Positions 5,755-64,000 of a stretch of DNA of 64,000 nucleotides are shown in pieces. The stretch spans positions 927,883-991,882 of the forward strand of contig JAKMXF010000066.1 of assembly GCA_024704765.1 (NCBI GenBank). Direction: 5' to 3'. The first letter of the stretch is position 1. Every line of letters starts with the position of its first letter. Origin of the DNA: Oopsacas minuta (lineage: Eukaryota; Animalia; Porifera). The notes under the pieces were generated by a model, which saw only the letters and a program-made list of their open reading frames with translations, was not told the DNA's origin and ran no database searches. The translations under genes were made by a program, and so were the position numbers.

Positions 5755-5872
5755 TTCTGTAATTACTATATAAGTGCATAAGGTCTGAATACAAGGTCAT
5801 TGATTTATTATAGTCTTTATCAGTTTTAAACTCTCTATAACTAGTCATTGAATTCCTGTTTGCCTATTAGAT

Positions 5873-8800
5873 ATGAGTAGAATACTACTCTTACTTCTGT
5901 TTATCCATATTCTTATAAGTCTCCTCCTGGTTAATGGACAGATAATATTCGATAATGAACCATACAGAACTGACCTGAATGAAGAAACTCCAATAAACAC
6001 AGTTGTGCTGACAGTATCCGCTATCGACCTGAGTATTACATCTACTACTGGGATGTACTCTATAACATCAGATGAGTTCATCATTGATTCTCTTGAAGGT
6101 TCTGTTAGAACTAATTCGATTATCGATAGAGAGGAATCTGGTACTCCTTTACTGTTCGCATTTGATGTTACTTATGTATCTGATATTGGTAAGCTTATCA
6201 TAGATCAATTGTACTATTGATTATTTCAATGTTCTATTGCTATCAGGCTTATCTTAATTCTTATTTTCTATTTAGGTAATGTTGGCACATCTACCATTAC
6301 AATATCGATAAAAGATATTAACGATAATACTCCCTCCTTCACTAACTCCACTTTCTACATAACTATACCTGAATATACTCCAGTAGATACTATTATCCAC
6401 ATAGCTGTAGCAACAGATGCTGATACTGTGTCAATACAAGAGTCTGTGGATGGAAATGGCATCTCTGTGTTTAATTATACGATTGATTTTGGTAGAGTTC
6501 TGTACTATATTGTAGGAGGAAATGGAAGTAACTATTTTAATATTGATGTGGATTCGGGTGAAATCAAGGTTAGTTTACTAACTCAATTCTTAGAATAATT
6601 TACAGTTTATTGTTTGTATATTTTCTGCTTAGCAACTAAACTTCATAAACAATAGATATTATTATCAGGAATAGTACACCTAACTCCATGATTAGTAGAA
6701 CAGAAGGTCATTAATATATGAGTGATGCAGAACACTGATAAGATGTATTAGTTTCGAATTAGCTATGTATTATTGCATCAACCTTAGTTAGTTATTATAT
6801 TGAACTATTTCATTATTTAGACTATGGTTGGCGATATCGATTTTGATTCTATTCCCTCTCTAACACTTAATATCAGTGCACAAGACGGACCTGGCTTAAC
6901 TGCATACGCCTTATTAGTAATCACTATAGAAGATATCAATGATAATACTCCCATTATTATATATCCTAACTCTTTCTCTATTACACTGAGTGAGGCTGTT
7001 AGTGTAGATCTTATATTGGTAGAGAATATTACTAGTATGGATCTGGATCATGGATTGAATGCTGACGTCACGTAAGTTATATTATCCGTGCTATGTAATG
7101 ATTTTTGTCTATAATATATTACCTTAATTTAATTTAGGTACTCTGTATCAATATCAAATCAATCAGACAGCTTCTCTATAGATCCCACTTCCGGTAGAGT
7201 GGTACTAATATCACCTCTGGACAGAGATTTAGACTCTGTAGTATCATTAACAATACTAGCTACTGATGGAGGTACACTAGCTCTCAGTAGCTCGATTATT
7301 ATTACTATAATATTAACTGATGTAAATGATAACACTCCTACATTCTCTAATGATGTGTTTATGTTTGATTTGATGGAGGATATTGTGAATGGCAGTACTG
7401 TATATGAATTTATTGCTGTTGATAACGATGAAGGTTTGAATGGCACAGTTAGGCAAGTTGTTATACGAAATATAGTATCATAATATGTATTCAAATATGC
7501 CATTTATATTTTCAACAGGAGTATACATACATTTACGATCTATTCAATTTTATAAATTAGCTATAATGTGTTTCTACGTGAAAACCCTTACTGGTCAATC
7601 TATACCAATCAACCTAGACCCAAATGTTACTATAGAAGATGTGAAAGAGTCTATAGAAGAGAGTACAGGTATTCCTGTACTCTCACAGCGTCTGTTATTT
7701 GCCAGTCACGAGCTAGATGATGAATTAACTGTACAAGAGTGTGGGATTGTTTCCGATACTACTGTACACCTGAATCTAGAGCTCAGCGGAGGTGCGAAAA
7801 AGCGCAAAAAGAAGCAATATTCTACACCTAAGAAGAACAAACATAAGAAAAAGAAGGAGAAGTTATTAGCTCTGAAATTCTATAAAGTTGATGATAACGG
7901 TAAAGTTACTCGTCTTCGTAGAGAATGTAATCGTGAGGAGTGTGGAGCTGGTGTATTCATGGCAGCACATTTCGATAGGCAGTACTGCGGGAAATGCGGA
8001 CTTACTTATGTCTTCACAAAGGAAACTTAGTTGAATTTATAGCTTTATAGCTTAGGATTATTAGATTTGACTTTATTAGTTATTCGTTGATTACTATGGT
8101 ATTTCATTAATTGTAGAATTTGTATCCGGTACAGGAGTAGTTCTGATTACGTTATAATTCTGAATAGAAATTTATTTATTCGATTTATTTCGCAGGTATT
8201 CTCTTTCTCATTCACATTTCCACCTATCTCCAGATACTGGTGTACTCTCATTGATACAAACACTAGACAGAGAGACTACTGGAGAATATACCTTTGCTAT
8301 AATTGCATTTGATTTCGGTACTCCAATACCTACCACTGGTAGTGCTATTGTAAATGTAACAGTACTAGATGTTAATGATAATTTTCCTATCTTTAATTCC
8401 AGTTATTTTGAGTTACATATATTGGATACAGAAATTCCTATACTACTCATATCTACCGTTACAGCTCAAGGTATAATATTTGTATTAATATTTGTTTATA
8501 CTATTCGTATTTGCATTAATTATAATTGCTAGATAATGATATCGGGACAAATGGTGATATAACATATTCCTTCACACCAGACAGCACAAATCCATTTGCT
8601 ATAGACTCTATTACAGGAGATATAACGCTTACAAATAGTGTATCATACTCCCTGAGTAATGAATGGCATAACTATACTGTTAATGCTATGGACAGTGCTG
8701 CAGCTAGTGAACAGAGAACTGGCTTTACACAGTTATCTATCCGGGTAGGTTATTATATTTAATAATAATCCTATGGCTAGATGAGATCCTGAGTAACACT

Positions 8801-11800
8801 GTATGTTCTTATAGGTACACGAGCCAGATTCATCTCCTCCTGTCTTCTCTCAGAGTTCATACAACACTACAGTACCTGAGAATACTACTGTTAATACAGT
8901 TATACTGACTGTCACTGCTACTGACATAGACAGAGGTATAAATGGAGATATTAGATATTATATTGTAGAGGAAGATAATGCGTTCTGTTATAACCTCAAT
9001 GAATGTGGTATTGCTGGTACTCTTGGTGTTAATCCTATTACAGGGAATGTGATTGTTAGCTCTCCTCTGGATAGAGATATAAGGTATAGTTTAGTTTGTA
9101 TGTTATATGACGCAATATTTCTAATCATATTTCAATATAGGGAATCTCTATCATTCCAGATAATAGCATATGATGGTGGATACCCTGTAGCAATGAATGA
9201 TACCACTAACGTAACTATTTTCCTGTCAGATTCTCCAGACACTCCTCCACAATTTCAGTCATCTTCTATCAATGCTTCTTTACAAGAGAATATTCTACCA
9301 CCTCACTTTATAACTTCTATAGTAGTTACAGATCCTGATTTAGGAGATGCTGGGCTACTCTCATTGCAGATTGATTACTCTGCATTGGATGGTATACTGT
9401 TTATATTAAATTCTACTACAGGTGAGCTATTATAAGAGATTATATTCTCCTTTAATTATCTTTACTTGTATATGCTATTCAGGTGATCTATACTCTAATT
9501 ATACATTTGATCGTGAAGCAAGTGATTCCTACCAACTTTCAATAATTGCAATAGATTTCGCTCAAATTCCCCTTACTTCCTATCTTCTGGTTAATATTAC
9601 TATTCTAGATCAAAATGATAATTCTCCATTCCTTCTACCCAACTCTTTCAATAGAATTCTTGAAGCTAAGCCAATTGCTACAGTTGTAGATTCAAATCTA
9701 ACAGTACTTGATAACGATATAGGTTTGAATGCTCAACTTTCTTACTCAATCTTGAGTATTTTACCAGAGAATCATTTTACAATAAACAATAATACAGGCC
9801 TCTTGTATACAGATTTTGTATTAGACATCACGGTAATATCTTCCTATAATATTTGTATACTAGTTCAAGATAATACATTGCCTTATTATAATTTATCATT
9901 CTGTATTGAAATACAAGTATTGGATGGCAATTTTAACCCTCCGATATTCTCACGAACTCAGTACAATACTACTTTATTAGAATCTTCTCCTATTGGATTT
10001 GTGTTAATAGATTTGTTGGCAACAGACAGTGATTTCTCTGATGATAATAACCTCATTTTCTATTTTTTAAACTCTACTTTCCCTACCGAATTTAACAGTA
10101 CATTTTCTATTAACAATTTGAATGGCAGCATTAGTTTGATTGGAGAGATAGATCGGGAGTATATTCACGAAATTATTATTCCAGTTATCGCTATAGATCA
10201 ACCGCTATTTGATTTACCTAAATCAGCTGTTACATATGTTACAGTGTATTTAGAAGATGTGAATGAATTCCCTCCTTATTTCAATACTACAAATGCTAGC
10301 ATAATTATATCAGAAGGAGTTCTACCAAATACTCTAATATTCAATTTGTTAGCTGCTGATAATGATGCTGATACTCCTAATAATGAGATTAGATATTCTA
10401 TTGCTCCCTCCCCGTATTCTTATTGCTTCTATGTAAATGAAATCACTGGAAATGTAAGTCTATTTATCTTGTGAGAATATTCGTATTAATTATCTGTTCT
10501 TAATTATTTTGTAGGTATACACTCAGACAGTGTTAGACCGCGAAACAGTACGATCTCTATCTCTTACATTCTATGCTTCAGACTTGGGTATTCCATCCCT
10601 AAACTCTACATTTATTCTATTTATTAACCTTTCAGATATTAATGATAACTCTCCTCAACTCTCAAATACCACTCTATACTCAGCTGAGAATCAGCTGTCT
10701 CCTTATACAATAGATTTCCTACAAACAGTAGATAATGATAGAGGAAATAACGGAACAATATACACAATGTTCTTACAAGATAATTTGTATAATTTCACAC
10801 TGAATAACGTTACAGGAGAGCTAATATCTTTTATAACATTTGATCGCGAAGATACACCATTTTATAACTTAACTGTAGTCCTAATTGATTCAGGAATACC
10901 TCAGTTACAATCTGTTATACACATTATTATAATTGTGACAGATGTTAATGATAATCCACCAGTATTCATACAAGAATCATATAAGGTATTTGTACGAGAG
11001 GACACAACACCAAATACATTCATTATGTCTGTAACAGCTACTGATTATGATATTAACACTAATGCTATTATATCATACACAATTGGTAGTCAAGATTTCT
11101 TTCAGATTGAGTCAGATACTGGGAATGTGAGGTCAATTGAGTTTCTAGACTTTGAATCTGTCACTGAACATGTTCTGCTAGTATACGCTACTGACGGTAT
11201 ATTCATTGAGAACACAACATTGACAGTATATTTGATTGATGTTAATGATAATCCTCCTGTATTCATACTTGGGTACCAGTTTACTATTAAGGAATGTGCT
11301 TCAGCACATACATATCTTGGTTCAATTGAAACTACTGACATAGATTCATATGAGAATAACACATTCACTGAGTATACGACTGATTCACAGTATTTCTCTA
11401 TACATAGTGAGTCCGGTCTGCTTAAAACTTTGCAGGCATTTGATCGAGCTATTCAAAAGCAGTATATTATCACGGTTATAGCGAATAATACATTAGCAGA
11501 GTTCCCGCTATACTCTGTGTTGGATATTTATATCTTTATTGAACCTGTAGCTGATAGTCCAAAATTCTCTGAGCAATTACAAAACATTGAAATTAATGAA
11601 GTTACACAAATCGGTGCTCTTATATACACATTTCAAGTGCTGGATTATCCTCACGATAGTTTAGGTGTTTCATATTCTATTCAGGCTGGGAATATTGATA
11701 ACCAGTTCTATCTTAACAGTTCTACTGGGGGATTGTTTCTACAGGAACAATTATCTTACTATAAACAGCCTCTTTACGCTCTGTCTATTGTTGCTATTGA

Positions 11801-17800: not shown

Positions 17801-20800
17801 GAAAATTGTCCTACATGATGCTAATGCATTTTCTCTATCATTCAGTCAACCTTCCTTCTATTTTTTAATACCAGATAACTCTAATGTAGGGAGTATAGTA
17901 GCTGACGTCACTGGTTATAATATTGATATATTTGATATTTCTACTAACACTGAATCCAGTCAATTATTCTCAATAACAGCTGATGGGGATATTATATTGC
18001 TGGATTTTCTAGATCCACAGACTGTCTATTCCTCTAATTTATTCGCTATGAACTCACAAGACACGATACAGACTGTAATTACTATTGAAGTATTTGCAAC
18101 ACAGAATAATCCCCCGATATTCTCATCATTGAATTACTATGTACATCTGTCAGAAGCTTTACCAATAGCTACAACCTTCCTAACAATATATGCTATAGAT
18201 AATGACGTCACTGATCAAGGTGTAAGCATTTCTTATACGATTTCCGATGGAGATGAGTTTGCTTTGTTTTCTATTGACAGTCAAACTGGTAGACTTTCAA
18301 TAGCCGAGAAAATTGACAGAGAAATAACTCCACTATTTAATCTTACTATACAAGCTGCTGGTAATGGAATAGGTATGACGTATGTAGTAATTATTATTGA
18401 TGACGTTAATGATAATGCTCCAGTATTCTCAGAAGACGTTTACCGTGCTACTGTCGTATCCGATATACCTGCAGGTACTTTGATACTACAAGCTATAGCG
18501 AATGATAATGATGCGGGAAGGAACAGTGACATATCTTATGCAATTGTATCACAGCCCATCCCCAGCTTGTTTGCTATAGATCCTTACAGCGGTGATATCA
18601 GACTGAATAGTAGTCTTATTGTGTACGATTACAAGAGCTATGCTTTCTACATTTCAGCAACAGATAACGGTCTGCCTTTACGACTAACTACAGAAATACA
18701 GGTGTATTTTACTATTGATCATCCCAACCTATATGATCCTGTGTTCACTACTCTATCTACTAATAGTACTATCCCTGAGACAACTCAAGATGGAACTCTT
18801 ATAGCAATATTCTATGCATTTGATCTTGATACTAACACCAGTGATGGAGTATATTACTCTTTATCTAATTATGAAAACCTTCCATTCTCACTGAGTAATA
18901 AGGGAGAGTTATACTTGACAAGTACGCTAGATTATCTGCAAGCTATAGTGTACAGGTTTGTAATTACAGCAACAGATAGTGGTACTCCTACAAGAAATTC
19001 GACGTTAGATTTTGCAGTATTCGTTGAGGATATCAACAACCATCTTCCTATCTTCTCACAGGATTCATACGAAATGATTCTCTCTGAGAACTATCAAATA
19101 CAAACTCCCTTTATAACAATCTCTGCTACAGATTTGGATGCAACCTCTATAACATATATAATCTCCCTAAATAGCTATATAGAGAATGGCGAGGCTATCT
19201 TCTCTATTAGCTCTGATACAGGAGTTATGTCGTTAGCTATTCCATTAGATTACGAAACCCTGGTGACACATGAATTGCTGATCACTGCAAGAGATCAGGG
19301 CTACTCTATTACTCAATTCAACAGCGTAACGCTTACAGTTATGGTACAAAATGTGAATGATAATCCTCCTATATTTTCCCCCACCACAAGCATTACAGCA
19401 ATCGTACCTAGACTATCTATGGCTGGTATATTTGTTAGCACAGTATCTGCTACTGATTTGGATAGCGTATCTATTCTATACTCTATTCTGTCTGGGAATG
19501 GAGATGGTTTGTTTGCTGTTGACGGGGAAACTGGCGATGTTACACTAGCTAGAGATGTTGGGGCATTTGCTGATAGTTTGTACAATGTGCAGTTGTTAGC
19601 TTTTGATGGAGAGTTGAGTTCTACTGGCTTATTACAGATTGAGATTAGTGATAATGCAAGTTATTGCTATGGTAAGTTTGCAGTACATTTACTACTCAGA
19701 TGAACATTGGGTAAATTCAATTTTATGATTATCTGACAAGGTGGCCGAGTGGTTAAGGCGATGGACTGCTAATCCATTGGGCTCTGCCCGCATGGGTTCG
19801 AATCCCATCTTTGTCGTAAACCTTTTGCTCGGCTTCAGAATAACCCCAAATATATTGTAATTATGAAACTAAGGATGCTACTTTTTCTACTTTTCTTATT
19901 TTCTAATTTAGATGGCTTATGTACTGATGTGTTACCTAGCGTGATCTGTACTACAGCTGATTGTACTACTTGTCCTCTTGACTTTGTAAGTTCTGGTATT
20001 TTTCATGTACTTCAATGTTTCTTTTATCTTTTGTTTCCCTCTTAGATCTTATCAACTACATCTACTTTTTGCTTCCTTTATACCTGCTTCTCTTCAGATG
20101 AGGTACAATAGACTATCATAGCTCTAACATTATACTGTAATTGTTTGTTTATATATTTCATTTAGTATCTTTGTGGAGAACAACAACCAGGCTGTATATC
20201 CTACTCATTACAATGCAATGGAGTTTGTAGTTTAAACTACTCGTTATGTGCTGCAGACAATCTCTGTTATCCAAACACTATTTCATCATTACCATGTGAT
20301 AATCAGAACACCATATGTCTTAATGGTTATATTCTAGTTCAGCTTTCTGATCAATCTCGTGTATGTACTCACCCTTCAGATCTACCAGCTATGGGTCAGA
20401 TCTGCAATACCCTCGGGAAAGTATATTGTGATGAGATTGATTCTTGTCAGAATATTCAAAATAACCCGTCTCTATGTCAACTGTGTTCTTCCCAAGAATT
20501 TCAGTGTCCAGACACAAATGAGTGTGTATCTTCTTCCAAAATGTGTTGTAGTACTAGTGACTATTTCTGTAACATAACAGATTCATGTCTATCAGCTGAT
20601 CTCTCATGTCCTCCTGTATCCTCTAATATAGCACCAACAATTCCTTCTAAAGCTATTCTACTTCCCTCCAGCTCCCTAGGATCCGTCATAGGATTACTAT
20701 TAGGCGATGGAACAGCTGTAGGAGTAGACACTCAGATGGAAGAGGTTGCGATTGCTATTATCTGTCAGTTCCCTGTAGATAATCTATCAGGTTATTGGCA

Positions 20801-23800: not shown

Positions 23801-26800
23801 ATGAATTTCTTCATTGCTAAGTGCTCCATACCATCAGCAATATCTCTACAGAATCTGAGTAGCAGCTTTTGAAGTTTGCTAGCGTTTTGGTAGTTATATT
23901 CCTGTGAATGACATAACTGCATTAAATACTGCCTTAACTCAATGTTAAGTAGCTCTGTAACAATCATATGAGGCTGTACTGTAGTGACGACACCAATAAA
24001 TTTGAGGATGTTTGGATGATCGAATTGTGAGAGAATCGCCGCTTCCCGAATAAACGCAACTTTAACATCGTTATTAACTTCTTCCCGTAACGTTTTTATA
24101 GCAACTTTTAAATCCCCGTACTTACTAGTGTAAACTGCATGACATATTACTCCGAAATTTCCTGTAGCAAACACGTCGCCTATCTTAAGATTATCCAATG
24201 ATATTTCATATGATCTAGGTCCTATACTGTTAGATAGCTCAGCTAGATTATAGGGTGGGTCTATGTATTCTAACTGCTCTCTCTTCCTATCTCTGAGTAG
24301 TTTGTTTATAATGTCATTCTCTTCTGATATTGTTTCGAGGTTACTTGATTGAGTAACTAGCTTATGGTAGAAGCTAACATTACTACCATGGCTTGCTGTA
24401 AGATCCTCCTGTTGTGTTAGAGGGATAATGTTGTTGTTTTGAAATACTGTGCAATTTCCCTGCTGTGATGTATTATTCCCTGAATATATACAGTTGTTAC
24501 TGCTAAGCTCAAAATAGTTATTCTCTCCTTGTCTATTCAATGAATGATGTCCTATTTCCGGACCAGGGACTACCTCATATATCCTCTCACTATGTTCCAT
24601 CCCCTGATCTACTACGTTAGAAAAATACGTGGAATCTGCTACTGCAGATCTGTCGAATGTTTGGTTAGGGCTGTTCATTAAATTATTTGATTCCGTCTGT
24701 AAGGTTTGAATCCGTCTGTTAGTTCTCTTATATCTCCTCATTTTCACGTATGTACGGGTTAAGCAACAAATTAAGATTACTATTATCACTATGGATAGCA
24801 GTAGGAAAATTATGAAAATTATCGAAAGGATTATCCGTACTGCTTTTCGTCTCTCACTTCCTGTACAGTCATCTTCTATACAATCTTGTGTAGGAAATTG
24901 AGTGCTATTAGTTTGTGTAGAGTTCATAAAGACTGTTGTGTTGCTTGTTAGATTAGTGGTAGTATTTGTATAGGATTGTGGAGTGTAAGTACTAGCATTT
25001 ATTGATATAGGTAGAGTTGTGCTTACGTTCTCTGTAGTTATATTAGTTGGTGAAATTTGTGTTGTATTATTTTCCGGACCAAGTGTTGTTGTTATTGTTG
25101 CATTTGTTGCCATCATAGTTGTTGTGCTCCTAGTTTCACAGCTATTCCCTGAATACCCATCCGTACACACGCATCTCTCTTCAAAACAGAATCCTCCGTT
25201 AATACAGTCATCTTGACATAAACAGGTTTTGAATTCATTCACTCTTTCACACATCCCTAATGCTTCACACTGAGCCATGCTTGCGCATTGTTGACACTGT
25301 ACCTTACTAACCAGCTGACATGCTGATAGTTCCTTTGTGTGATTACATTGTGTTAGAGAAGTTTCATTACCAATACAATCTAAAGCTGATAATTTCAATA
25401 ATCCATCACATAGCAGTGGAGTTATTGTTATATCTCTCTCTTTAGCTTCCAAATATCCAAATCTTTTGCAGTATACTTCATTATTTTGATATATCCCATC
25501 ATTCCATCCAGCTGCACAGATATATGTCCATCCTAGATATATTCCATTATTATAACATACTTGTATTACGTCATGAGGTAGTCCTATATCAATGGTTCGT
25601 TCATCACCTTCCCTACTGCAGATTTCAGCATTATTTAACACACAAATAGTGACTAGAATTGTCAATAAGGTAATCAATCTTTTAAGCGACATTCCTTCAG
25701 TTTAGAATGAATAATCTTTTCTAATCTTTTTATACTTGTTATTTTTGGATGCTTATTTTCTGAGAATTAGACGCCTTCATTTTTAGTTAATTAATGGTCC
25801 AATTATCGGTCAATATATTTTTCATGATACATAGATATATCAACATACATCCTTGTGATTGCATTTTCCTCAGAAATACCAAATTACTATTATGTGATAG
25901 AATATATTCTTCCAATGAGGATTACTTTTTGGTTAATTTTTATCATTAATTTGGTTGCTTAACTTATTCCAATTACAAAGATCTTCTATGCTTACGTAGA
26001 TTTCTATTTAGTATTTCTAAGCACTTTCCGTGATACTTCCAATCTGTACAGATTATCCTATTTCATAGAATAATACATTATAAGTCTGTGTGTGTGTTAT
26101 ACATCATCCAATTACTGATTATTTCTATGTATTTTCTCGAATTCTGTCCCACAGGGATTGCGATGGAGTATGTGACGGTACAGCTTCTATTACTTCCTGT
26201 GGGTTATGTACTGGTGGTACAACAGGATTACCAGTAGATTACCCACTAGATTGTAGAGGTATTTGCTTTGGTAACTATACTACAGATTCTTGTGGAGTTT
26301 GTCAGCTAATTTCTAATCCGATTGATTACAGAGATTGTTCAGGAGAATGTTTTGGCAATGCAAAGGTATGGAGCCTTGCGTATTATTTAATCACATGTAA
26401 TTCATTTTTTTCTATTAGATCGATCAATGCGGTACTTGTTACGGAGGCTCATCAGCTGTTCCATCAGCGGATTCACTATTAGACCAGTGTGACATGTGTG
26501 GAGGAGACGGCACTAGTTGTATTGGATGTGATAATACTATTGGTTCTGAGGTTGATAATTGTGGAGAATGCGAGGGAGATAATTGCGATTGTATAAAGGT
26601 AAGAATAATATCTTACGTATAGTGATCTTTTTATAATAATCTACTATAGGTAACTCAAGTCTATCCTACAAGCATACTATCAGGAGAGCAGACCTATGTG
26701 ATAGTGGATGGAGCTGGTTTATTCTTCAAACCTGATCCTCTATCTCCATCAACATATGATAACGGATCATATCTTCCTTTATGTGGCGGAATCAGACAAT

Positions 26801-36000: not shown

Positions 36001-37901
36001 TTTGTACCTTCTTTTCCATCTTGCCCAGGCAATCCAGGTAACCCCGGGAGACCATCTACCCCTGTTAACCCTGGCTCTCCATCCAGACCATCTCTCCCCT
36101 TGATACCAACATCTCCCTCATCTCCGCTATCACCTGGTAGACCCTTATCACCGTTTATACCAGGTAAACCTATCTTTCCTTGATCACCAATCGTTCCCTT
36201 CTTCCCTACACTACCATCTCTCCCCTTTTCACCTACCACCCCTTTCTTTCCATAAATACCTGGATCTCCGTGCGTGCCCTGAAATCCTTTCAATCCTTCT
36301 ACTCCTTTGCTTCCTTTCTTCCCAACAGGTCCATCTAGTCCTACTTCTCCGATATATCCTCTATTGCCCTTCTGTCCCTTTATTCCTTTCAATCCTTGAT
36401 TACCCTTCTCTCCAGACTGCCCCTTTAATCCGTAATCACCGGTTCGGCCTATTAGTCCTCTTATCCCCTTGTGACCTAGTCCCCCTTTCTTTCCCATATC
36501 TCCTATCGTACCCTGAGGCCCCATCATTCCCTGTGCTCCTTTATCACCAGTAAGACCCACAATACCCTTTTCAGCTGGAGGTCCAGACGGTCCTGCAACG
36601 CCCTTTATCCCTACAGCCCCCTTCTCTCCATATTCTCCAGTTTTTCCCTTTTCTCCTTTTTCACCTTGTGGCCCTGTCTTACCAGCTTTTCCTGATCTAC
36701 CTTCACTTCCATCGATACCCGGAGGTCCAATTGGTCCTGCTAACCCAAAGAACCCATCTGGTCCGCTTTCACCTTGCTCTCCCTGGTCTCCTGTATCTCC
36801 TTTCATACCAGGACCTCCTCTAGCACCCTTTCTACCTGGAATACCCATACTACCTTTGTTACCAACAGGTCCAGGGGGGCCTACTCCACCATCAGGTCCT
36901 GGGGGTCCTGGCGAACCAATGTTTCCAGGATTCTCTAAACAGTTTGCAGTTATTCCTTTAGTTGGATATGGTTGACTGTTTGACCCTAGTGTTTCTGATG
37001 ATACATTTCCTATATAAAGGTATAGCAATTGAAAATATGTGTTAAGGATACAATACAGTGCATAGACCGTTTTACTATTTTATATTGACTTACCTTGATT
37101 TATCAAGCAACACTTGGTGTAATTATCATTCAAGCATGAATGCTGCCATCCACTGCCTCTAATTAACGTCCATGATATAGCACATAGAATAGGAGGAGAA
37201 GGAGATTCAGGATCTAGCAGTATTATATCTGGACTTATGAGGCTGATGTTTGAAGAGTTGTTAGTGCTGTTTGTATTGTTACTGGTGGTGATATCGATAT
37301 TGGGGTGATAACCAAGCAATGGTAGACTGTATTTAGAACCACGAATGCACGCTTCTATTGAGAAAGGATTTGTTTTGATGAAAAGGCTAAATGCTTGCGA
37401 TTCAGCTGAATAATTGAGCAATAATTGTTGTAAATCTTCTTGGATATTCCTCCAACTTGTATCAGCATTTGTTAGATTCGTACCATTTCTATCTGCACAT
37501 TCTTCAACAAATAATAACTCAGTTCCAAGCTGTAGAGATAAAGTACAATTATAATTCGAGTCATTATGCAAAACTGAAAATTTTAACGCGAAAATAGTAA
37601 CCAAGTTTTCCAAACTCGATCTTTGTCTGTTTAAAAAGCAAAACCGAACATAGAATGTGAGAGGTTCTAAAAACGAACTGTTTGTGAATGTTGTAGAAAT
37701 ATATTTTGGTGTGTCTTGATAATAACTTGTATTAAAACTGTAGACTTGTAATTGTTGGATGTCAATCAGAGAATATGAGAGTTCTTCAGCCTCCAAAAAT
37801 GTTGGAAAACCATCAACTTGATCTCGTGTATATGTTAAAAATACAATTATTATCATTAGAAGTGAGCAAGTTAGGTTGTGGCTTGTTTTCATATTAATCA
37901 T
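33100..37901 (-). CDS. Fibrillar collagen alpha chain (TSPN-like N-domain, 1014-aa triple helix, COLFI), about 1532 aa, 4 exons
   Basis: Exons 37901-37094, 37009-35162, 35104-34907, 34844-33100 (last acceptor is AAG). Gly-X-Y runs from 36926 to 33766 = 3042 coding nt = 338 triplets. COLFI motifs SCKHI..SGYYWVDPN..DAIYVRCNF..GETCI and VGEVCFL. Confidence 0.93.
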
Positions 37902-38551
37902 GCTTTCTCAATTTATTTTCGTGCATATACTTCTGCAAAGAATCTCGGATGCATTGGCGAATAGACTAGCTAGTACACACGTCTGCTTCAATCTGCTAGC
38001 AACTTCGTTAACTACAATAATGTTAAAATATAACCAAGGATTCAATTTGGAATAAATCCTCAACTACAGCAAGTTATAGCTAATATTATTAGTGTTATAC
38101 AATTTATATTGAAATTCCTGCAGTAAGACTCTAATATACTGGTGGTAGTGTATTGTCTATTGAAACATGAGCCTTCTAATCGTAATAGCCTTATTAACCC
38201 ACTCATGTATAGGGCATTTTAATTATAGCCACTAATATTATGCGATCTTATATGAAACCCCAAGCAAGTCTATCTATACCTCAGTTACTTGTTTGTAATA
38301 TATGTGCATACATAGAATTATATTCTCTTAAGTTTAATAAGGAAATTCTGCATATTTCTATATTTGATGATATGCAATTCGCTGATAAATCTACATATAT
38401 ATATACATACATACATTTAAATACAACTCGTGGGAAATCTGAATGAGAGCCTCTTTATCGGGTAGATATAGTTTGTAGAAATCTTTGACTTTATATTTGT
38501 TTTCAATATCAGGCATAGGCCTTGTCACCCACGATCTTTCAGAAAAAGACC

Positions 38552-38848
38552 ATGAATCAATGTGAGTGTATTTGTTGGTATATTCGTGCAATGCAACGTA
38601 TCTTCCAGATGATTTTATCAGGAAATGGTTACTGTACACAGAACCAATGCTTCCCTACTACACAACAACAAATGGACACTAACACGATATTACAACCTGG
38701 AAATGTAATACTGTTTGTACTGTTTATTTTATGGCTAATCCTCTCATTCTATTATTTCCTGTTTCTAAGACCAAATCTTCGCTCAAGAAAGCTTCAAATT
38801 ACTAAGATAGAGACAATGAAGGAATTATGTAATTTGTTCTATGAATAA
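38552..38848 (+). CDS. SMIM14: Small integral membrane protein 14-like, 98 aa
   Basis: CECIC..RAMQRIF.....GYCTQNQC, one TM helix, then FLRPNLR, matching the SMIM14/C4orf34 pattern. ATG at 38552. Confidence 0.8.
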   Translation: MNQCECICWYIRAMQRIFQMILSGNGYCTQNQCFPTTQQQMDTNTILQPGNVILFVLFILWLILSFYYFLFLRPNLRSRKLQITKIETMKELCNLFYE

Positions 38849-39025
38849 CAATTTCAATATGTAATGTTGCATTTTCAAATAATTATTTACTATCGTAACT
38901 GATATTAAATAGCATGCTATGATCCTTGGTTATCATAGATTGGGCTAAAATATTTATGAATCTTCTCCCCTATTTATCCCAAATAATATTCTGTTGTAAC
39001 TCTTGAAACTTAGCCAAATAATATT

Positions 39026-40081
39026 ATGTCAGAGACTCCTGTTCCATTATCCTCGTGTCCTTGTTGTGGGCGGAATTTCCATCCTGACGTCATCGATCGG
39101 CACGTAGGTATATGTCAGAAAAACAAACAAAATTCAATGAAAAGGAGAACTTTTGATTCATCAAAAATGCGGGCTAGAGACACAGAAATAGAAAAGTTAA
39201 ATGAAGAACGGAAGTTTCTGCCCTCTCATATGCGAGAGAAACCTAAATTGCCTGCGAAAAAATCAAATTGGAAGGCAAAGCATGACGAATTTATACGAAC
39301 TATCCGTGGAGCAAGGGGTGGAGATGGAAGCGATTATGCTTCACAGAGGGATGCCCCTAAGTTTGAAAATCCTGATTACGTACAGTGTGAGATCTGTTCT
39401 CGTCGGTTCAATGAAGCTGCAGCTGAGAGACATATCCCATTCTGTAAGGAACAACAGAATAGATTGAAACAGAAAGGATGTAACCAAGCATCTGCCGCTG
39501 ACAGAGTGACAAAAAGAACTCAGTATAAAGCACCTGTACCTAAATCAAGCCAGAAACGAGCTCTCATTCCAACTCCAAAACAGACTAGAACCCGACCACT
39601 TCATGAGGATACTGATACTGATCATATATCTACACAGCAATATGATAGGAGAATTGCACGTGGAGAGAGATCACGAGGTGAAACACATCAAGACTTATCA
39701 TCCACCAGGGATATTAACAGAGATAAACGGCATCCTTATACAAAGAATAATGAGCGTACAAATGACCATGAAACTATGATTGATAGAAAAAGTAGTCATA
39801 ATTCAGGATATGATATGACGTCAGGTACGTCAATGTCAAACACAGAATCTTCACAATCAGTTCAACATGTCAGAGGTTATCCATCACAGCTACCTACACT
39901 CCGTAACAAAAGTCATTCAGCTAGCTCAGTAGGCAGTAACGGTAGTAATGGCAGTTCTAATAGAATTATACCACTGAATGAATACGGTACCCCTATGTCT
40001 AAATTCTGTTATGAGTGTGGAGGGAGTTATCCTGTCCCACAGGCTAAGTTCTGCTGTGAGTGTGGTACCAGACGTATTTAA
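39026..40081 (+). CDS. ZC2HC1A: Zinc finger C2HC domain-containing protein 1 (FAM164-like), 351 aa, intronless
   Basis: CPCCGRNF..DVIDRHVGIC, SNWKAKHDEFI, YVQCEICSRRFNEAAAERHIPFC, C-terminal KFCYECG..YPVPQAKFCCECG. Confidence 0.92.
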   Translation: MSETPVPLSSCPCCGRNFHPDVIDRHVGICQKNKQNSMKRRTFDSSKMRARDTEIEKLNEERKFLPSHMREKPKLPAKKSNWKAKHDEFIRTIRGARGGDGSDYASQRDAPKFENPDYVQCEICSRRFNEAAAERHIPFCKEQQNRLKQKGCNQASAADRVTKRTQYKAPVPKSSQKRALIPTPKQTRTRPLHEDTDTDHISTQQYDRRIARGERSRGETHQDLSSTRDINRDKRHPYTKNNERTNDHETMIDRKSSHNSGYDMTSGTSMSNTESSQSVQHVRGYPSQLPTLRNKSHSASSVGSNGSNGSSNRIIPLNEYGTPMSKFCYECGGSYPVPQAKFCCECGTRRI

Positions 40082-40486
40082 TATTATCATTCAAGCACTT
40101 GAATACTACTAATACATTCAATTGATTGTGTAATGTGTTCTACATATTCTCAAAGAACATTCTTATATGACGATACTAATGTGTTTATAATTCGTCGATA
40201 ATGATATAATAATTCCTCAACTCTCCCATCCATTATTATGAATATATTCCCCTCTAACTGATTGATATTTTGATGCAAAAATGGAAGTACTACCGCGTAG
40301 AGAAACCTCCATAAACGTGGGCTGTGGGAACGGAGTGAATAATAATTAATGCGAATCCCTAACACCATACAAATGAACCGTCACAAACTGTGAAACTGGG
40401 TAGCATTTCTGCGTCCCTGACACCCTCTTTGTGGAAGTTACATTTATTAAATTATGTTATTTGTATTTACATACTAACACTTTAGC

Positions 40487-43400
40487 ATGACAACAGAACT
40501 GGACCTAGCAGACTTAGGTCTACCTATAAATTTGAAATCAGAAATAGAAAGTAAACTCAAGGAACTAGATGTGTATATTGACGAGGAACTACCTGATTAT
40601 ATTCTAGTACTTTTGGCTAATAAAAAGTCTCAAGCACAAATGTGTAAAGATTTGAGATTATTCTTTGGTTCTCTTACTGAGACATTTGTTGATTGGGTAC
40701 ATGTGAGGGTGAAGGATTTGAAAATTGAACAGCAAGGGAAACAAAAGGAAATTATTGATACAAAAAAGAATAGTGAAGAGAATTCGAATACAGAAAATAA
40801 GGCGGGTTATTATACGACCCCCTATAGCTATTTTACACATCCTGTAGACCCCTCCCATAGAATGCAATACAAATTTTGAGATTCTGTGGACCCCCTTGTG
40901 TTGTTCGTGGACCACTATGGGGATCATGGATCAAGATTGGTGAATGTTGGTCTTTCGAATAGCGAAATATTCCACTTGAATATCAGTCAAATTGTGTAAC
41001 TATTTGTCTTTTCTCTTTCTAGTCAAAACACAGAAGATTATCAACTCATTCAGAAAAATCAGATACAAATAATCAATCAAAAATCAAAAGTCCTTTAAAT
41101 AGTCCTAAAACTAAAAACCTAGAAATATCATCCAAAGAGAACTCATCTTTACGAAAAAGGAGATCTAGAACTCCTGAACCAATCAGGAAATCTAAGCCAC
41201 GAATACATCAAGAAGGTAAATTGCTATAACACATATTATATGTGTATTGAATACTTATAGTTGTAGACTATCTTACGTCATCAAGACGCTCTTACTCTAC
41301 TGATAAATATAAAACACAACAGAATAATACTGTGGTTGATAGACAGATAGAAAATAAGGAAATATCACAAAACACAAGGTTAGATATTGGTGTAACAGGC
41401 AACTCCCGTTATATCTAAGTCCAAGAGACCGTGATAATTACTTCGATAGAAAAGATGAAATATATTTCACTTTGACGGTTTGGGACCATCTTTGTACGAT
41501 TTAAGACTTTCTATATAAGCGGGTATTTCAATATATCCTTGTTATAACGAGAGTTGACTGTATGTATATATCCTATTGATTATAGACACTCTAACAGATA
41601 CACTACTATATCATCACCTCCTGAATCAGTTAATAATTCCATTCAAACAAGTCCTATAAGTACTGTGACGTCACCTGTTAGTAAAGAGTCACGTGTTAGA
41701 GATAGAGGGAGGGGGAGAGACCGTCAGGTAGTTGTACAGGGAGACAGGAGAGAAGATAAGAGAAGGATTAGATCTAGATCTACTCCTATATCTCCTACAT
41801 TGAGGTTCGTTTTGGAGGTTTGAAAATATGTAAATTTACGAGATTATATCCATAGAAAGTCTATGGAAGATCATCATACCAGGCACAACAAGCCACAACC
41901 TAAACTCCGCTATTTCAACAGATCTCCATCCTCTCCTACTATTAAGCATCATTCTTCAAGGAAAACTCCTATAAAGAGAACTCAAGACAATCACCAACAG
42001 CTATCTTCTGTAGTAAGGATAAAGCCTAATAGAGATATAAGAGCTGGTAGAAGTATCACTATACAGGATGAACAGAAAGGTAAGAGTTCATTCGGCTATG
42101 AATAGACAGAGTAACCTTACAAACGGAGTACCATGAACACCTTTTGTAGAGCTATCACTGTACTATTTCATATAGTATCTCTATGTAGGATCAATACGTC
42201 TGGTACATAAAGCACTGAATGAAGCAGCTGCCAGCACAGCTAGAGGGTTTCCTCGAAATCCCATCAGTCCCAGGAAGAGGAGAGGAGTCATGGATAGATT
42301 AGGACCTCATGTAGATAACTCTGATATACTCAGTGATATTACATCTCCTGACAGGAAGAGAAATGCTGTTCTGCATCAACAATCTTTCACAGATGTAAGC
42401 TGGTTATCCCTTTTTTACCAATTTACCATATTCTGTGTACCCCAGCTAAGAACCTCTGAGTTATATTATATCCTATAGAGTATTCCTTCTCAACACCGTA
42501 TGAGCCTATCAGACTCAGAAGCAGACATATCATCACGTACAATAGATCCTATTAAAGCACAATTTGACGTGATAAAGCTATCCCGTACAGATTCAGCCTG
42601 CTATATATCAGATGATGATCTATTCCCTCCCAGACAGGATAGTCCTAAACGTAGAATACTATCCGGTGATATTGATATGTTTGATACAGAAGAAGTACTA
42701 GAAACTAAACGCAGAGTTCTGCCTATTAAGAAACCTACAAAACCTAAGTTTATAGTTACACTAGACGGAGCACAGACTCACTATAGACAAGTTATAGGTA
42801 CTAATACAGGGAAAGAAGATAAGCTAGCAAGTAAGTGTTTATTGACAGCTTAGGACAATCACCGCCATAATATCGACAGGTTGTTACCGTTGAAAGTGTT
42901 AGTATTTTCTAATCTCACTAAATACCTTTTCGGTATTAATTCAATATATTTCTAGATAAACTTGATATCAAACAACGTCTGGGTATCAAGGCCAATGAAC
43001 TCCCTGAGGAGATAACAACACCCCTCTATACCCCACCTGATATATCACCTCTATCTGAGACGCTAAAAACCGCAGTTCTTAAACCGAAAATTCTCACTTC
43101 AACTCCTAAACCAATTGAGGCTGTAGCAGACAGGTGTAAATACTGGCCTAATTGTAAATTAGGTGATAAATGCGATTTTCATCACCCATCTCTTCCTTGT
43201 AAGAGCTTTCCTTATTGCAAATTTAACCAGAAATGCTATTTCATTCATCCTGACTGCAAATTCGATCCATACTGTACTAAAGTAGACTGTGCATTTCTAC
43301 ATAGACATGTACGTACTAATAAACCACCTAATCACTTCAAAAATACATTTTCGTATACTCCAGATAGTAAATCTACATTTCCCGCCCGTTCACAGCTGAC

Positions 43401-43521
43401 CTGGACACCAGGCCAGAAAATAGTTAAAGACAAGGAAGATGAAGGTAATACACATATAAGTGAGCGTAAGTTCGCTCTGGAGGAAGTACAAACTGTTTCG
43501 ACACCTAAAACTGAGAGTTGA
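40487..43521 (+). CDS. ZC3H14: Polyadenosine RNA-binding CCCH zinc finger protein (Nab2 family), about 730 aa, 8 exons
   Basis: Exons 40487-40801 (GC donor), 41023-41215, 41261-41378, 41586-41804, 41856-42079, 42189-42394, 42479-42830, 42956-43521; total 2193 nt, in frame. PWI-like DEELPDYILVLLANKKS; C-terminal RCKYWPNC..C.FHHP..CKSFPYC..C.FIHP.CKFD..C...C.FLH. Confidence 0.88.
41396..41560. mobile_element. 165-bp pogo/Tigger-like (Tc1-mariner) MITE in ZC3H14 intron 3
   Basis: Imperfect TIRs CAGGCAACTCCCGTTATATC (41396) and GTTATAACGAGAGTTGACTG (ending 41560, followed by TA); internal GGGACC motif typical of this class. Confidence 0.7.
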
Positions 43522-43795
43522 ATCAGGTCACCTTATAGACACTTAAGTTAGCTAAGTATACCTTTGTTGGAGATAAAAGAATTCTTAATATGATCAAATA
43601 TAATTAATCAATGGGGGTACTCTATTTACTGAGGTTTAACAGGTCTAATTTGTCCATATAATGGGTTTGTACGCAATGCGTGGTTAAATCACTTTTTTAC
43701 TAATTCCAGCAGATTGAGTTATAAATTCTTCTTCTGTCCTCTAGCTACCTCTACTGTTAATGATATATTTGTTGCTTTTTGTTGTGTTTATTAAT

Positions 43796-43843
43796 GTTTG
43801 TTTGTTTGTTTGTTTGTTTGTTTGTTTGTTTGTTTGTTTGTTT
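43796..43843. repeat. (GTTT)12 microsatellite
   Basis: Read directly; lies between the ZC3H14 stop and the DHFR start. Confidence 0.95.
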
Positions 43844-43909
43844 ATTACTGTTAGGAGAGTTTTTGATTACTAATTGAGTTATTTGCCTAATTTCTGTATC
43901 AGATTAGCA

Positions 43910-44497
43910 ATGGCATGCAAATTACAAGAATTTCCAAACATTCTATTAAACCTAATTGTTATCTATGACAGCAAATTTGGAATCGCGAAAAATGACAAAT
44001 ACCCATTCCCAAGATTCCATACAGACTTTGAATTCATGTGCAGTATAAGCAAACAAATTTCTGATCCTACAAAACGAAATGTGTTAATTTTCGGTAGGAA
44101 GTCTTGGACTGCAGATTGTTCCTTGATTAGAAGAGTATGGAAATCTGAATATATAATAGTTCTATCTAGATCCATTAATTCTATTGAAGGAGTTGACTAT
44201 GTAGCTAACTCGTTAGAAGATGCTATTACACATTTGTTATTACCATCTGCTAGCTGTGAGACAGAAAATATTTGGGTTTTTGGTGGTTCTTTTATCTATA
44301 AACTTGCATTGGAGTCTGATTTTAATTGCAAAATATTCGCTACAGAAATATCACATGATTTTGGTTGTAATGTGTTTTTCCCTTTCCAGTCTCTGCCAGC
44401 TATTAAAGAAGCATATGATGATAGATTACCAACTAAAGATATCGTAAAAGAACACGGATATGAATATACATTTCATGTTTACGACAAGATAGCTTGA
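43910..44497 (+). CDS. DHFR: Dihydrofolate reductase-like protein (divergent), 195 aa, intronless
   Basis: LNLIV...FGIAKN..YPFP, NVLIFGRKSW, IIVLSR, VANSLEDAI, NIWVFGGSFIY, F.C.VFFP, EHGYEYTFHVYDK. Confidence 0.85.
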   Translation: MACKLQEFPNILLNLIVIYDSKFGIAKNDKYPFPRFHTDFEFMCSISKQISDPTKRNVLIFGRKSWTADCSLIRRVWKSEYIIVLSRSINSIEGVDYVANSLEDAITHLLLPSASCETENIWVFGGSFIYKLALESDFNCKIFATEISHDFGCNVFFPFQSLPAIKEAYDDRLPTKDIVKEHGYEYTFHVYDKIA

Positions 44498-44504
44498 ATA
44501 TATA

Positions 44505-44644
44505 TAATCGTTATATCGTGAGTATATTGAAGTCTCAAATTGTGCTAATATAGCTACAAACCTTAAGTAAACATATAATTTATCGCATATTTCGAAGTAA
44601 TTTTCGCGGTTCCTTGAGGTTCGATATAACGGCAGTTGAGTGTA
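44505..44644. mobile_element. Partial MITE of the same pogo/Tigger-like family (right TIR intact)
   Basis: TTTTCGCGGTTCCTTGAGGTTCGATATAACGGCAGTTGAGTG-TA ending at 44642-44644; the left end is reduced to CGTTATATCG. Confidence 0.55.
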
Positions 44645-44694
44645 TATACGAGTTTTCAAATTGTTATATAATATTTATTCAATACATCATAGCA

Positions 44695-62533
<17,839 letters not shown>

Positions 62534-62618
62534 GTCTATAATACTAAATTCCATTCCTCTTATAAATAGCATATTCTATCTTACATACAACAATATTGAC
62601 ATATTTCTAATCACCAGC

Positions 62619-64000
62619 ATGGCAGCTGGCTCAATTAGCGCCCCTACAGTAATTCCTCTCCGTATACCTACTTCATTTTCACAGAGCAAGCTCTGTATAG
62701 ACACAAACACTCCGATAGAACTATGCTCACCCTCTCCAAATGTTAAGATATACTACTCTCTGAATGGAATTAAACCTAATCCTTATAAGAAAGATTTCAA
62801 AAAGTCTTCAACATTTCCTTATACAGCTCCCTTCACACTATGCATAGGCAAACATACGATAAAAGCTCTTGCTATTACAAATGATAAGCAAGCACAGAGT
62901 GGTACAGTAACAAAGGTATTTACTGTGGTTGAGCCTCAGATTATAGTGCATAAGCCTGTTGCAGAAAAACCCGTATCAGAAAATACTCCAGCTGTTGATG
63001 ATATAGGGAAGGCTAGGCCAGTTTCTCAAGAAACTTGTGATATGATTAAACCTTCTATTCTTACTCCACAGTCTCCTAAGGTTATTTCTAGGCCAAATTC
63101 TGGACGTCCATCTTCAGGTAAATCTAAGTACCATCAATTCCCGTTATATCGAAGCTCTATGTATCGCGATAATTACTTCGATATGACGAGAGTTGACTAT
63201 TTTATTTGAATCTCTGTTATAGTGAAGGCAACTTCCATTACCTTCGAAGACAGTCTAACTCAGGCTCAGTCTCAGCTAAAATTATCAACCCGATCTCTTT
63301 CCCATTTATCAAATGCTCCTAGCTTAAAGAGCTCAGAAGTAATGAGCACAGCACAAGATACAATAAAGCTACTACAAGAGACTAATTATTTACAGTGTAT
63401 ATTCTGTTTCTGTCCGCGTCCCTCTGATCCGTTTTCCCGTCACTGCCCTCAATGCGGTTCTCCTCTCCCAACTCTACCATCTGCTTCTAAGGATCTCACT
63501 ATCCCACCTCCTGGTACAATTGGACAGTGTCTTGAATGTAAATGTTCTGTTCCTTTGAACCTCAGTCACTGTGTAGTCTGTGAAGCTAATCTAACTCCCA
63601 GACTACTCCCGCAATCTTCACATGTTTTAAAGGAGAAATTGCTCTGTTTATCATGTGGAACTGCGAACCCAGACGGAACTTTCAAATGTTTAACATGCGA
63701 GAATTTACTATCCACAGAGGAGGGTTTAATAAAGCCTAAGAACATTGGTGATACCTTGAAGTGTCCATTTTGCTCTGCTTATAACGGGAGACGTTATATA
63801 TTCTGTGTAGCATGTGGGTATAGGATTAAACCAAAGTATACAGGAGGTAGTGACAGTGATCATACTCTAGATGTTGATATTATAGAAGATTCTAGAACAA
63901 CTAATTCTATAGCTACACAAACTCAAGGTATATTCTTTCCATCTTCTAAATCAATCGAACTTAAAGGAGAAACTTCCCCTGTAAAAGAGGTTGTTAAAAA
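62619..64000 (+). CDS. DZANK1: Double zinc ribbon and ankyrin repeat protein 1, 5' part (runs off window)
   Basis: Exon 62619-63117 MAAGSISAPTVIPLRIP...KIYYSLNG.KP..FPYTAPFTL; intron 63118-63222; exon from 63223 TNYLQCIFC..PRPSDPFSRHCPQCG with further CxxC ribbons. Confidence 0.9.

Follow-up and report, generated by a model that had tools for sequence, protein, structure and literature searches.

Conserved acceptor-like sites before start codons point to spliced-leader trans-splicing in the glass sponge Oopsacas minuta

Introduction

In many genes of a 64,000-nt stretch of the Oopsacas minuta genome (the window, which here means this whole stretch of DNA), a YAG trinucleotide stands a few nucleotides before the start codon. 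Are these sites 3' splice acceptors at which a spliced leader (SL) is added in trans, acceptors of ordinary introns in the 5' UTR, or no splicing signals at all? SL trans-splicing in glass sponges is already known. An earlier note on this DNA had stated that it is reported in hexactinellids, and it is indeed published (Douris et al., 2010, as cited in PMC7986045 and PMC5619915; PMC10282587, 2023); the leader of Aphrocallistes vastus is given there as about 37–44 nt (PMC10282587). The O. minuta genome paper contains no mention of trans-splicing. From the data presented below we consider it likely that the YAGs before the ATGs are the footprint of SL trans-splicing and that a second, TATA-type class of genes is not trans-spliced.

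Material and Methods

The window covers positions 927,883–991,882 of the forward strand of contig JAKMXF010000066.1 (assembly GCA_024704765.1), and its annotation is CDS-only. Its 18 genes were scored for a YAG before the ATG, and two nulls were used, letter shuffling and all 2,223 ATGs of the window (empirical YAG rate 0.26). Contigs from sequencing runs were compared with 5,901 letters of the window, using the DNA runs X1–X3 and the RNA-like run X4. Five GT..AG joints inside ZC3H14 were present in X4 alone and in none of the DNA runs; judged by these splice joints X4, which carries no RNA record, behaves as an RNA run of the same sample. For the comparison of orthologous starts, syntenic loci from five further assemblies of glass sponges were used (L013, L017, L018, L019, L020 and L021).

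In the protein index, eS31 (154 and 181 aa), NHL and SMIM14 were absent, and the remaining window proteins matched on the NCBI genome contig only. A homolog search with eS31 returned no O. minuta transcript, its matches being orthologs in other glass-sponge assemblies only. Three Logan contigs with the MOB ortholog (L011, L012 and L016) were considered as transcripts and rejected as DNA; metagenome scaffolds match L012 and L016 colinearly, and an upstream indel distinguishes L011 from them.

Results

The earlier note had counted a YAG 0–6 nt before the ATG in 8 of the 18 genes. This count was reproduced exactly, and recomputation of all its YAG-to-ATG and AAG-to-ATG distances gave the same values. 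The sites considered as acceptors are the following.

5868–5870, plus strand: TAG, 2 nt before the cadherin ATG (5873), the weakest case
7558–7560, plus strand: TAG, 5 nt before the UBL-eS31 ATG (7566)
38540–38542, plus strand: CAG, 9 nt before the SMIM14 (DUF2615) ATG (38552), Oopsacas only
39011–39013, plus strand: TAG acceptor, 12 nt 5' of the ZC2HC1A ATG (39026), the sole junction seen directly in RNA among the matches listed
40472–40485, plus strand: TACTAAC (40472–40478) and TAG (40483–40485), the TAG 1 nt before the ZC3H14 ATG (40487)
43905–43907, plus strand: TAG, 2 nt before the DHFR ATG (43910)
44690–44692, plus strand: TAG, 2 nt before the EFCAB5 ATG (44695)
49616–49618, plus strand: AAG abutting the MAP2K(+) ATG (49619), candidate acceptor
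55197–55199, minus strand: TAG, 5 nt before the PDXK ATG (55191)
58349–58351, minus strand: CAG, 6 nt before the PABP-like ATG (58342), Oopsacas only
62615–62617, plus strand: CAG, 1 nt before the DZANK1 ATG (62619), Oopsacas only

How far the count exceeds chance depends on the null. The chance level of about 3 in 18 given in the earlier note agrees with letter shuffling (mean 3.0, P(≥8) = 0.005), but the null built from all ATGs expects 4.7 (P = 0.07). Any AG at most 2 nt before the ATG was observed in 8 of 18 genes versus 3.7 expected (P = 0.02). The YAG pattern is real; taken alone, the in-window sequence statistics are only suggestive.

Comparison with other glass sponges showed that the acceptor is kept in six of the seven flagged genes that are comparable. 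The orthologs of ZC2HC1A, ZC3H14, DHFR, EFCAB5, eS31 and PDXK have an AG 0–6 nt before the ATG, and this AG belongs to a YAG in 11 of 12 cases. Over the flagged genes, 11 of 14 orthologous starts have a YAG within 6 nt (background 0.206, P = 5.5e-6), versus one of seven in unflagged genes (Fisher P = 0.016). The TAG of ZC2HC1A lies 2 nt before the ATG in both orthologs (L017, L018), so that the spacing across species is 12/2/2, and in the same two loci DHFR has a CAG at 0 nt and a TAG at 4 nt, respectively (spacing 2/0/4). The YAG of ZC3H14 (1 nt) and the TAG of EFCAB5 (2 nt) stand at the same distance in both. For UBL-eS31, AATTAG plus 5 nt plus ATG is kept in L019 and L020 and the remaining upstream sequence has diverged; PDXK orthologs have a TAG at 6 nt (L013) and an AAG at 5 nt (L021). 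Upstream identity (−68 to −9) is at the shuffled level for ZC2HC1A, ZC3H14, DHFR, EFCAB5 and eS31. Variable spacing within randomised upstream sequence fits an acceptor and not a fixed Kozak context. The RNA-confirmed cis acceptors of ZC3H14 are A/T-rich, mostly TAG and without a pyrimidine tract; the acceptor-like sites before the ATGs are of this same type, and their retention in diverged sequence indicates selection.

Two details of the earlier note fared less well. The perfect TACTAAC before ZC3H14 is present but not conserved, and because it is absent from the orthologs it carries no weight. The cadherin TAG was not upheld as an acceptor, no YAG being found near the candidate orthologous starts in L019 (ATG 208) and L020 (ATG 268). 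An ortholog of the PABP-like gene was not found in the fetched loci. MAP2K(+) has a conserved TATA-like block, TTTAAATA, at 49554–49561; its orthologs in L018 and L021 combine the same block with a CAG at 5 nt.

A leader was seen directly at ZC2HC1A. In one X4 contig, 21 non-local letters, AAATCTTCATAAAAAACTTAC, plus an ambiguous AG, abut position 39012, the AG of the TAG at 39011–39013. In this gene and this contig, an mRNA leader that is not encoded beside the gene is joined exactly at the acceptor AG. The search for a common non-genomic leader proposed in the earlier note yielded this one junction, in one gene and one contig among the matches listed, beside which 117 further loose contig ends exist. 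The 3' end of the leader reads ...AAAAAACTTACAG. Its letters had no match in the 64-kb window on either strand at up to 3–4 mismatches, so that a cis exon for ZC2HC1A would have to be separated from it by an intron longer than 39 kb; the mean intron of O. minuta is 341 bp (O. minuta genome paper). They were likewise not found in any fetched glass-sponge locus. An exact search of JGI metagenomes gave eight matches, judged to be chance, in three unrelated contexts and none followed by AG-GT, and a literature search for the letters matched Staphylococcus primer papers only. The loose part of the contig comprises 21 of the k = 31 letters, a length that may reflect branching of the de Bruijn graph at a leader common to many transcripts.

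No hit to an Rfam SL family was found in the window. The minus strand of a 338-bp tandem array at 1–2182 looked SL-RNA-like, with a donor-like GT plus AAUUUUUUGG. This array was considered as SL RNA donor and rejected; it has no leader match, Rfam hit or fold signal.

RNA was also found in unprocessed form at two of the sites.

40043–40491, plus strand: colinear RNA-run contig from the ZC2HC1A 3' end through the 405-nt spacer to the first 5 nt of the ZC3H14 CDS
43853–43997: RNA-run contig, colinear across the DHFR acceptor

These X4 contigs cross the ZC3H14 and DHFR acceptors colinearly, and therefore unspliced RNA exists too. The first is the only RNA contig over 40082–40475 among the matches listed.

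A second group of genes has a TATA motif upstream.

25695–25734, minus strand: RTK upstream region, with AAG 2 nt before the ATG (25692) and TATAAAA at 25728–25734, 42 nt before the ATG
47645–47651, minus strand: TATAAAA of the NHL-repeat gene, 40 nt upstream of its ATG (47611), with no YAG within 79 nt
53264–53270, minus strand: TATAAAT, 57 nt before the MAP2K(−) ATG (53213), no YAG within 35 nt

MAP2K(−) and NHL thus carry a TATA box 40–57 nt upstream without a conserved acceptor. The NHL orthologs (L017, L018) retain the TATA at −48 to −50 and those of MAP2K(−) (L021, L013) at −45/−46; neither of the latter two has a YAG within 130 nt. The AAG of RTK had been listed as a possible acceptor; with its TATAAAA the region resembles the TATA-type genes without acceptors, and judged in Oopsacas alone it is probably an ordinary promoter and not an acceptor.

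Could the packed genes also be transcribed together? Of the co-directional gaps in the earlier note, those of 118 nt (Rab stop to cadherin ATG), 177 nt (SMIM14–ZC2HC1A) and 197 nt (DHFR–EFCAB5) were found, but a gap of 85 nt was not located. With the further gaps of 405 nt (ZC2HC1A–ZC3H14) and 391 nt (ZC3H14–DHFR) in the same run, all five are short, as an operon would require. In addition to trans-splicing, SMIM14 > ZC2HC1A > ZC3H14 > DHFR > EFCAB5 (38552–44695 onward) might form one polycistronic precursor, from which mRNAs would be cut by polyadenylation and SL trans-splicing, giving downstream cistrons capped 5' ends. We think this unlikely. The five same-strand genes do have an acceptor before each downstream ATG (stop-to-ATG gaps 177, 405, 391 and 197 nt), and their order and orientation are conserved in two other glass sponges; the synteny, however, includes opposite-strand genes too and is therefore not specific to the five-gene run. 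ZC2HC1A, ZC3H14 and DHFR lack a TATAWA within 90 nt upstream in all three species, unlike the TATA-type genes, but in the other species a palindromic TCGCGGTTTT motif, promoter-element-like, lies 32–47 nt before the ZC3H14 and DHFR ATGs. For the polycistronic precursors raised in the earlier note, the RNA evidence consists of the colinear contigs 40043–40491 and 43853–43997 over two spacers. Contigs over two genes do not prove a single transcript, as read-through, pre-mRNA and DNA traces are expected to give the same. The spacers are also long and vary between species (215–585 nt). Operon spacers are about 100 nt in nematodes and almost nil in tunicates; those of the window exceed the spacers of known metazoan operons in both length and variability. 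From hexactinellids, according to the cited literature, operons are not known. If the reading were true, the five-gene run would give Porifera its first demonstrated operon, none having been reported from the phylum so far.

Ordinary cis introns in the 5' UTR, with unannotated first exons, would likewise leave an acceptor before the start codon, and the CDS-only annotation would not display them. The earlier note had named such introns with nearby donors as the finding that would speak against trans-splicing. No joint into 39013, 40485, 43907 or 44692 from such an intron was among the RNA joints of X4, although five internal introns of ZC3H14 were seen in this run. Nowhere in the window do the letters joined at 39013 occur, and the spacers (165–400 nt) must already contain the 3' UTR of the upstream gene, of which at least 95 nt are conserved downstream of ZC2HC1A. 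We regard cis introns as a very improbable source of these AGs.

Scarcely credible, too, is that the YAGs are chance or an initiator or translation-context motif and the leader contig an assembly chimera: in favour of this are the empirical null, the single leader contig among the matches listed, the non-conserved cadherin TAG and a TATA-like block 26–33 nt before the EFCAB5 ATG (two TATAWA within 90 nt upstream in Oopsacas), but the YAG is kept at variable spacing within otherwise randomised sequence, the leader junction sits exactly on the AG, and SL trans-splicing is published for hexactinellids.

Discussion

SL trans-splicing, the explanation proposed in the earlier note, is supported by a non-local leader at one of its listed AGs in RNA and by conserved acceptors in six of the seven comparable flagged genes. 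According to this explanation, ZC2HC1A, ZC3H14, DHFR, EFCAB5, UBL-eS31 and PDXK would have a functional 3' splice acceptor 0–12 nt before the start codon, and SMIM14, the PABP-like gene and DZANK1 probably belong to the same class, which would then comprise about half of the window genes. A small SL RNA, encoded outside the 64 kb, would provide a capped leader with AAATCTTCATAAAAAACTTACAG as its last 23 nt. The spliceosome would join this leader to the TAG or CAG, the upstream 'outron' would be discarded, and the 5' UTR of the mature mRNA would consist of the leader plus a few bases. Both the use of this leader at the remaining acceptors and the SL RNA donor itself are inferences. MAP2K(−), NHL and probably RTK would not be trans-spliced and would be expressed from an ordinary TATA promoter 40–57 nt before the ATG.

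For annotating the genomes of O. minuta and other glass sponges this would mean that a genome-colinear 5' UTR or a nearby promoter signal is lacking for many mRNAs, that a YAG directly before an ATG helps to recognise the true start codon, and that gene starts divide into two classes, SL-acceptor and TATA. As to the biology, little is added beyond the publications of 2010 and 2023.

The system would come from the same animal class and use the same mechanism as the published hexactinellid SL, in which the leader at mRNA 5' ends maps away from the gene and is found on a subset of genes or reads only, as here. Those reports rest on ESTs and long cDNA reads, whereas the O. minuta case is a genomic footprint, with acceptors 0–12 nt from the ATG that are conserved across glass sponges and stand beside an acceptor-less TATA-type class.

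With nematode SL1 trans-splicing in C. elegans the proposed system shares the exchange of an outron for a capped leader, at an acceptor usually situated near the start codon. C. elegans, too, has trans-spliced genes beside others that are not trans-spliced. Unlike in nematodes, the O. minuta leader has an unrelated sequence, and an SL2-type second leader and operons are not evidenced here.

The tunicates Ciona and Oikopleura, in which SL trans-splicing was reportedly described by Ganot and colleagues in 2004, are similar in having compact genomes in which co-directional genes are tightly packed and an AG acceptor immediately precedes the ATG. Tunicate spacers are near nil, whereas those of the window measure 118–405 nt, and 215–585 nt in its relatives, and they contain conserved 3'-UTR sequence and possible promoter motifs.

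Candidate acceptors upstream of start codons

Eighteen start codons in the window were fixed independently of an earlier note, which had described splice acceptors directly before start codons, and the upstream sequences were extracted. A YAG lies 0-6 nt upstream of the ATG in 8 of the 18 genes, 9 nt upstream in SMIM14 and 12 nt upstream in ZC2HC1A; AAG is found 0 nt upstream in MAP2K(+) and 2 nt upstream in RTK, and TACTAAC is present at 40472-40478, ahead of the ZC3H14 ATG. These starts confirm the pattern described in the earlier note, and all its YAG and AAG distances were exact on re-measurement. Among the small co-directional gaps that it listed, those of 118, 177 and 197 nt were correct and the one of 85 nt was not located; the ZC2HC1A-ZC3H14 and ZC3H14-DHFR spacers measure 405 nt and 391 nt, respectively.

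When the 60 nt ahead of every start were shuffled, 3.0 of 18 were expected versus 8 observed (P=0.005), which matches the chance guess of about 3 of 18 made earlier. With all 2,223 ATG triplets in the window as an empirical null (rate 0.26), 4.7 were expected versus 8 (P=0.07), and any AG within 2 nt of the ATG was observed 8 times versus 3.7 expected (P=0.02). Counts from the window sequence alone are no more than suggestive of an acceptor signal, and their weight varies with the null chosen.

Gene content

The window is AT-rich (32-41% G+C) and densely packed with genes, and exons are large. Genes were identified by their domains: zf-C2HC_2 (ZC2HC1A), zf-CCCH_2 with a weak Nab2 N-terminus (ZC3H14), DHFR_1 (DHFR), PfkB/Phos_pyr_kin (PDXK), Mob1 (MOB), RRM/MLLE (PABPs), DUF2615 (SMIM14) and Fn3_assoc (DZANK1). 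Pkinase, Cadherin, ubiquitin plus Ribosomal_S27, NHL and Cofilin_ADF domains are also present; Pfam gave no match for EFCAB5 exon 1.

The eS31 gene is nested between cadherin exons in Oopsacas. UBL-eS31 is also found amid same-strand cadherin-domain ORFs in two relatives, between two of them in locus L019 (3230-5192) and after two in locus L020 (3144-4465); the nesting is therefore old. The 9.2-kb open cadherin exon is followed, after 31 nt and in the same orientation, by a tRNA-Ser(GCT) gene (19734-19817, + strand), which apparently sits within the giant cadherin gene.

Conservation in other glass sponges

Syntenic loci in five other assemblies were reached via the eS31, DHFR and MOB orthologs, and orthologous ATGs were located by tblastn with the first 35-40 residues.

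YAG-to-ATG distances (nt). Sources: L017 and L021, ERZ25071281; L018, ERZ25069837; L013, ERZ26869290; L019, ERZ25072730; L020, ERZ20067936.
Gene (ortholog loci): Oopsacas; ortholog 1; ortholog 2
ZC2HC1A (L017, L018): 12; 2; 2
ZC3H14 (L017, L018): 1; 1; 1
DHFR (L017, L018): 2; 0; 4
EFCAB5 (L017, L018): 2; 2; 2
eS31 (L019, L020): 5; 5; 5
PDXK (L013, L021): 5; 6; AAG at 5
cadherin (L019, L020): 2; none; none

Of the 14 orthologous starts of the tabulated genes, all flagged in the earlier note, 11 have a YAG within 6 nt versus a background of 0.206 (P=5.5e-6, species taken as independent; P=0.012 in a conservative per-gene test), compared with only 1 of 7 for unflagged genes (Fisher P=0.016). Identity to Oopsacas over -68 to -9 is at the shuffled level for ZC2HC1A, ZC3H14, DHFR, EFCAB5 and eS31, and the YAG of these five genes has therefore been retained while its surroundings were randomised. 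The spacing of the YAG is variable, which is more in keeping with an acceptor than with a fixed translation context.

The MOB-PABP region (L013, L015) appears to be an inverted duplication on one contig, ERZ26869290 ctg353402, with MOB at 5001-5645 (+) and 8117-8761 (-), and may be an assembly palindrome.

A leader junction at ZC2HC1A

Four sequencing runs (X1-X4) from one sample and study, none of them recorded as RNA, were aligned to 38900-44800 (5,901 letters). Contigs of X1-X3 are colinear with the genome and represent DNA. X4 behaves as RNA, because five GT..AG joints within ZC3H14 (41376 to 41584 or 41596, 41802 to 41854, 42077 to 42187, 42394 to 42479) occur in this run alone; an additional intron (42831-42955) was rebuilt from short X4 loose ends. 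Among the cis acceptors of ZC3H14 that RNA confirms, five read TAG and one, an alternative acceptor for intron 1, reads CAG; they are A/T-rich and lack a pyrimidine tract, and the pre-ATG sites are of the same type.

In X4, a 21-letter loose end, AAATCTTCATAAAAAACTTAC, stands directly before place 39012; the AG at 39012-39013 belongs to the TAG 12 nt upstream of the ZC2HC1A ATG. The order in the X4 contig is therefore leader, AG, CCAAATAATATT and ATG. The two letters AG at the junction fit leader and genome alike; the leader most likely ends in ...CTTACAG, since G is the last letter ahead of the GT in most cis exons of this region. The 21-letter leader has no match on either strand of the window with up to 3 mismatches, and the 23-letter leader has none, at up to 4 substitutions, either there or in any of the glass-sponge loci retrieved. 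A cis first exon of ZC2HC1A would thus require an intron of more than 39 kb, the mean intron of the O. minuta genome being 341 bp. Among the X4 joints listed, none leads from a local donor into the AGs at 39013, 40485, 43907 or 44692, and the leader junction is seen in one contig among the loose ends listed. The loose end falls short of the assembly word length of 31, which may reflect branching of the graph at a leader common to many transcripts.

In the DNA runs, high depth together with loose ends marks two short dispersed repeats within introns of ZC3H14 (40853-40896 and 41448-41543), and a (TTTG)n microsatellite lies between ZC3H14 and DHFR (43783-43852).

Genes with TATA boxes

Four genes have canonical TATA boxes 40-65 nt ahead of the ATG:
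25728-25734, - strand, TATA box of RTK
47645-47651, - strand, TATA box of NHL, conserved in orthologs
53264-53270, - strand, TATA box of MAP2K(-), conserved in orthologs
49554-49561, + strand, TATA box of MAP2K(+), conserved in orthologs

Such a distance implies that the 5' UTRs are very short and that these genes form a class apart from the acceptor-bearing one. The TATAAAT/TATAAAA box of MAP2K(-) and NHL, 40-57 nt upstream of the ATG, is kept in all species compared; a nearby YAG is absent from MAP2K(-) in every one of them, and for NHL the sole case is L017, with a CAG 5 nt ahead of the start. RTK of Oopsacas carries TATAAAA at -42. MAP2K(+) is intermediate. It has a conserved TTTAAATA block; the AAG of Oopsacas lies at 0 nt, and two relatives have a CAG 5 nt upstream of the ATG.

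A possible operon

The earlier note had also proposed operons, which the data do not show. SMIM14, ZC2HC1A, ZC3H14, DHFR and EFCAB5 are co-directional in an order conserved in relatives, and X4 contigs run colinearly across two spacers (40043-40491 and 43853-43997), although a spanning contig does not equal a single transcript. The spacers are, however, long and differ in length (from 215 to 585 nt among relatives), the one after ZC2HC1A contains a conserved 3'-UTR block, and in relatives both ZC3H14 and DHFR have a promoter-like TCGCGGTTTT motif upstream, so that an operon of these five genes is improbable.

The conserved block comprises about 95 nt right after the ZC2HC1A stop (40082-40175; L017 2270-2365; L018 2502-2600) and is near-invariant in three glass sponges, with the core ATTGATTGTGTAATGTGTTCTACAT...AGAACATTCTTAT, while the remaining spacer has diverged. 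No covariation was found in it among the three species, so it counts as a sequence element and not as a proven structure. The motif, a near-palindrome (AAAATCGCGGTTTT or AAAATCCCGGTTTT) 32-47 nt upstream of the ZC3H14 and DHFR ATGs in other glass sponges (L017 2466, 6954; L018 2685), is a possible promoter element. In Oopsacas, a copy (TTTTCGCGGTT) is located at 44604, 91 nt before the EFCAB5 ATG, within a short dispersed repeat (44595-44646) that recurs in DNA contigs derived from other parts of the genome.

Probable spliced-leader trans-splicing

The best reading, and a likely one, is that about half of the window genes undergo ordinary spliced-leader (SL) trans-splicing. An SL RNA encoded elsewhere would supply the leader, which would be joined to a TAG or CAG 0-12 nt upstream of the ATG, and compact TATA promoters would drive the remaining genes. 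The same leader is presumably used at the other acceptors, and an SL RNA gene is expected to exist.

A 338-bp tandem array at 1-2182 (at least 6.5 copies, 99% identical, continuing past the window start) reads in each unit, on the minus strand, ...GATTCTAGCTGAAAAGG, directly followed by GTGAACC... and then ...AGAATTTTTTGG..., that is, a donor-like GT and a Sm-site-like run. Its likeness to SL RNA genes is superficial; it has neither the X4 leader nor an Rfam match or fold signal, and it was rejected as the leader donor.

The words trans-splicing, spliced leader and operon are all absent from the O. minuta genome paper. The leader junction at ZC2HC1A and the conserved acceptors support the trans-splicing put forward in the earlier note, a process already known in hexactinellid sponges, where it is established according to citations (PMC7986045, PMC5619915) of Douris et al. 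(2010). For Aphrocallistes vastus, the genome paper (PMC10282587) describes a trans-spliced leader of ~37 bp that a minority of the long cDNA reads carry, with skipped read ends peaking at 44 bp.
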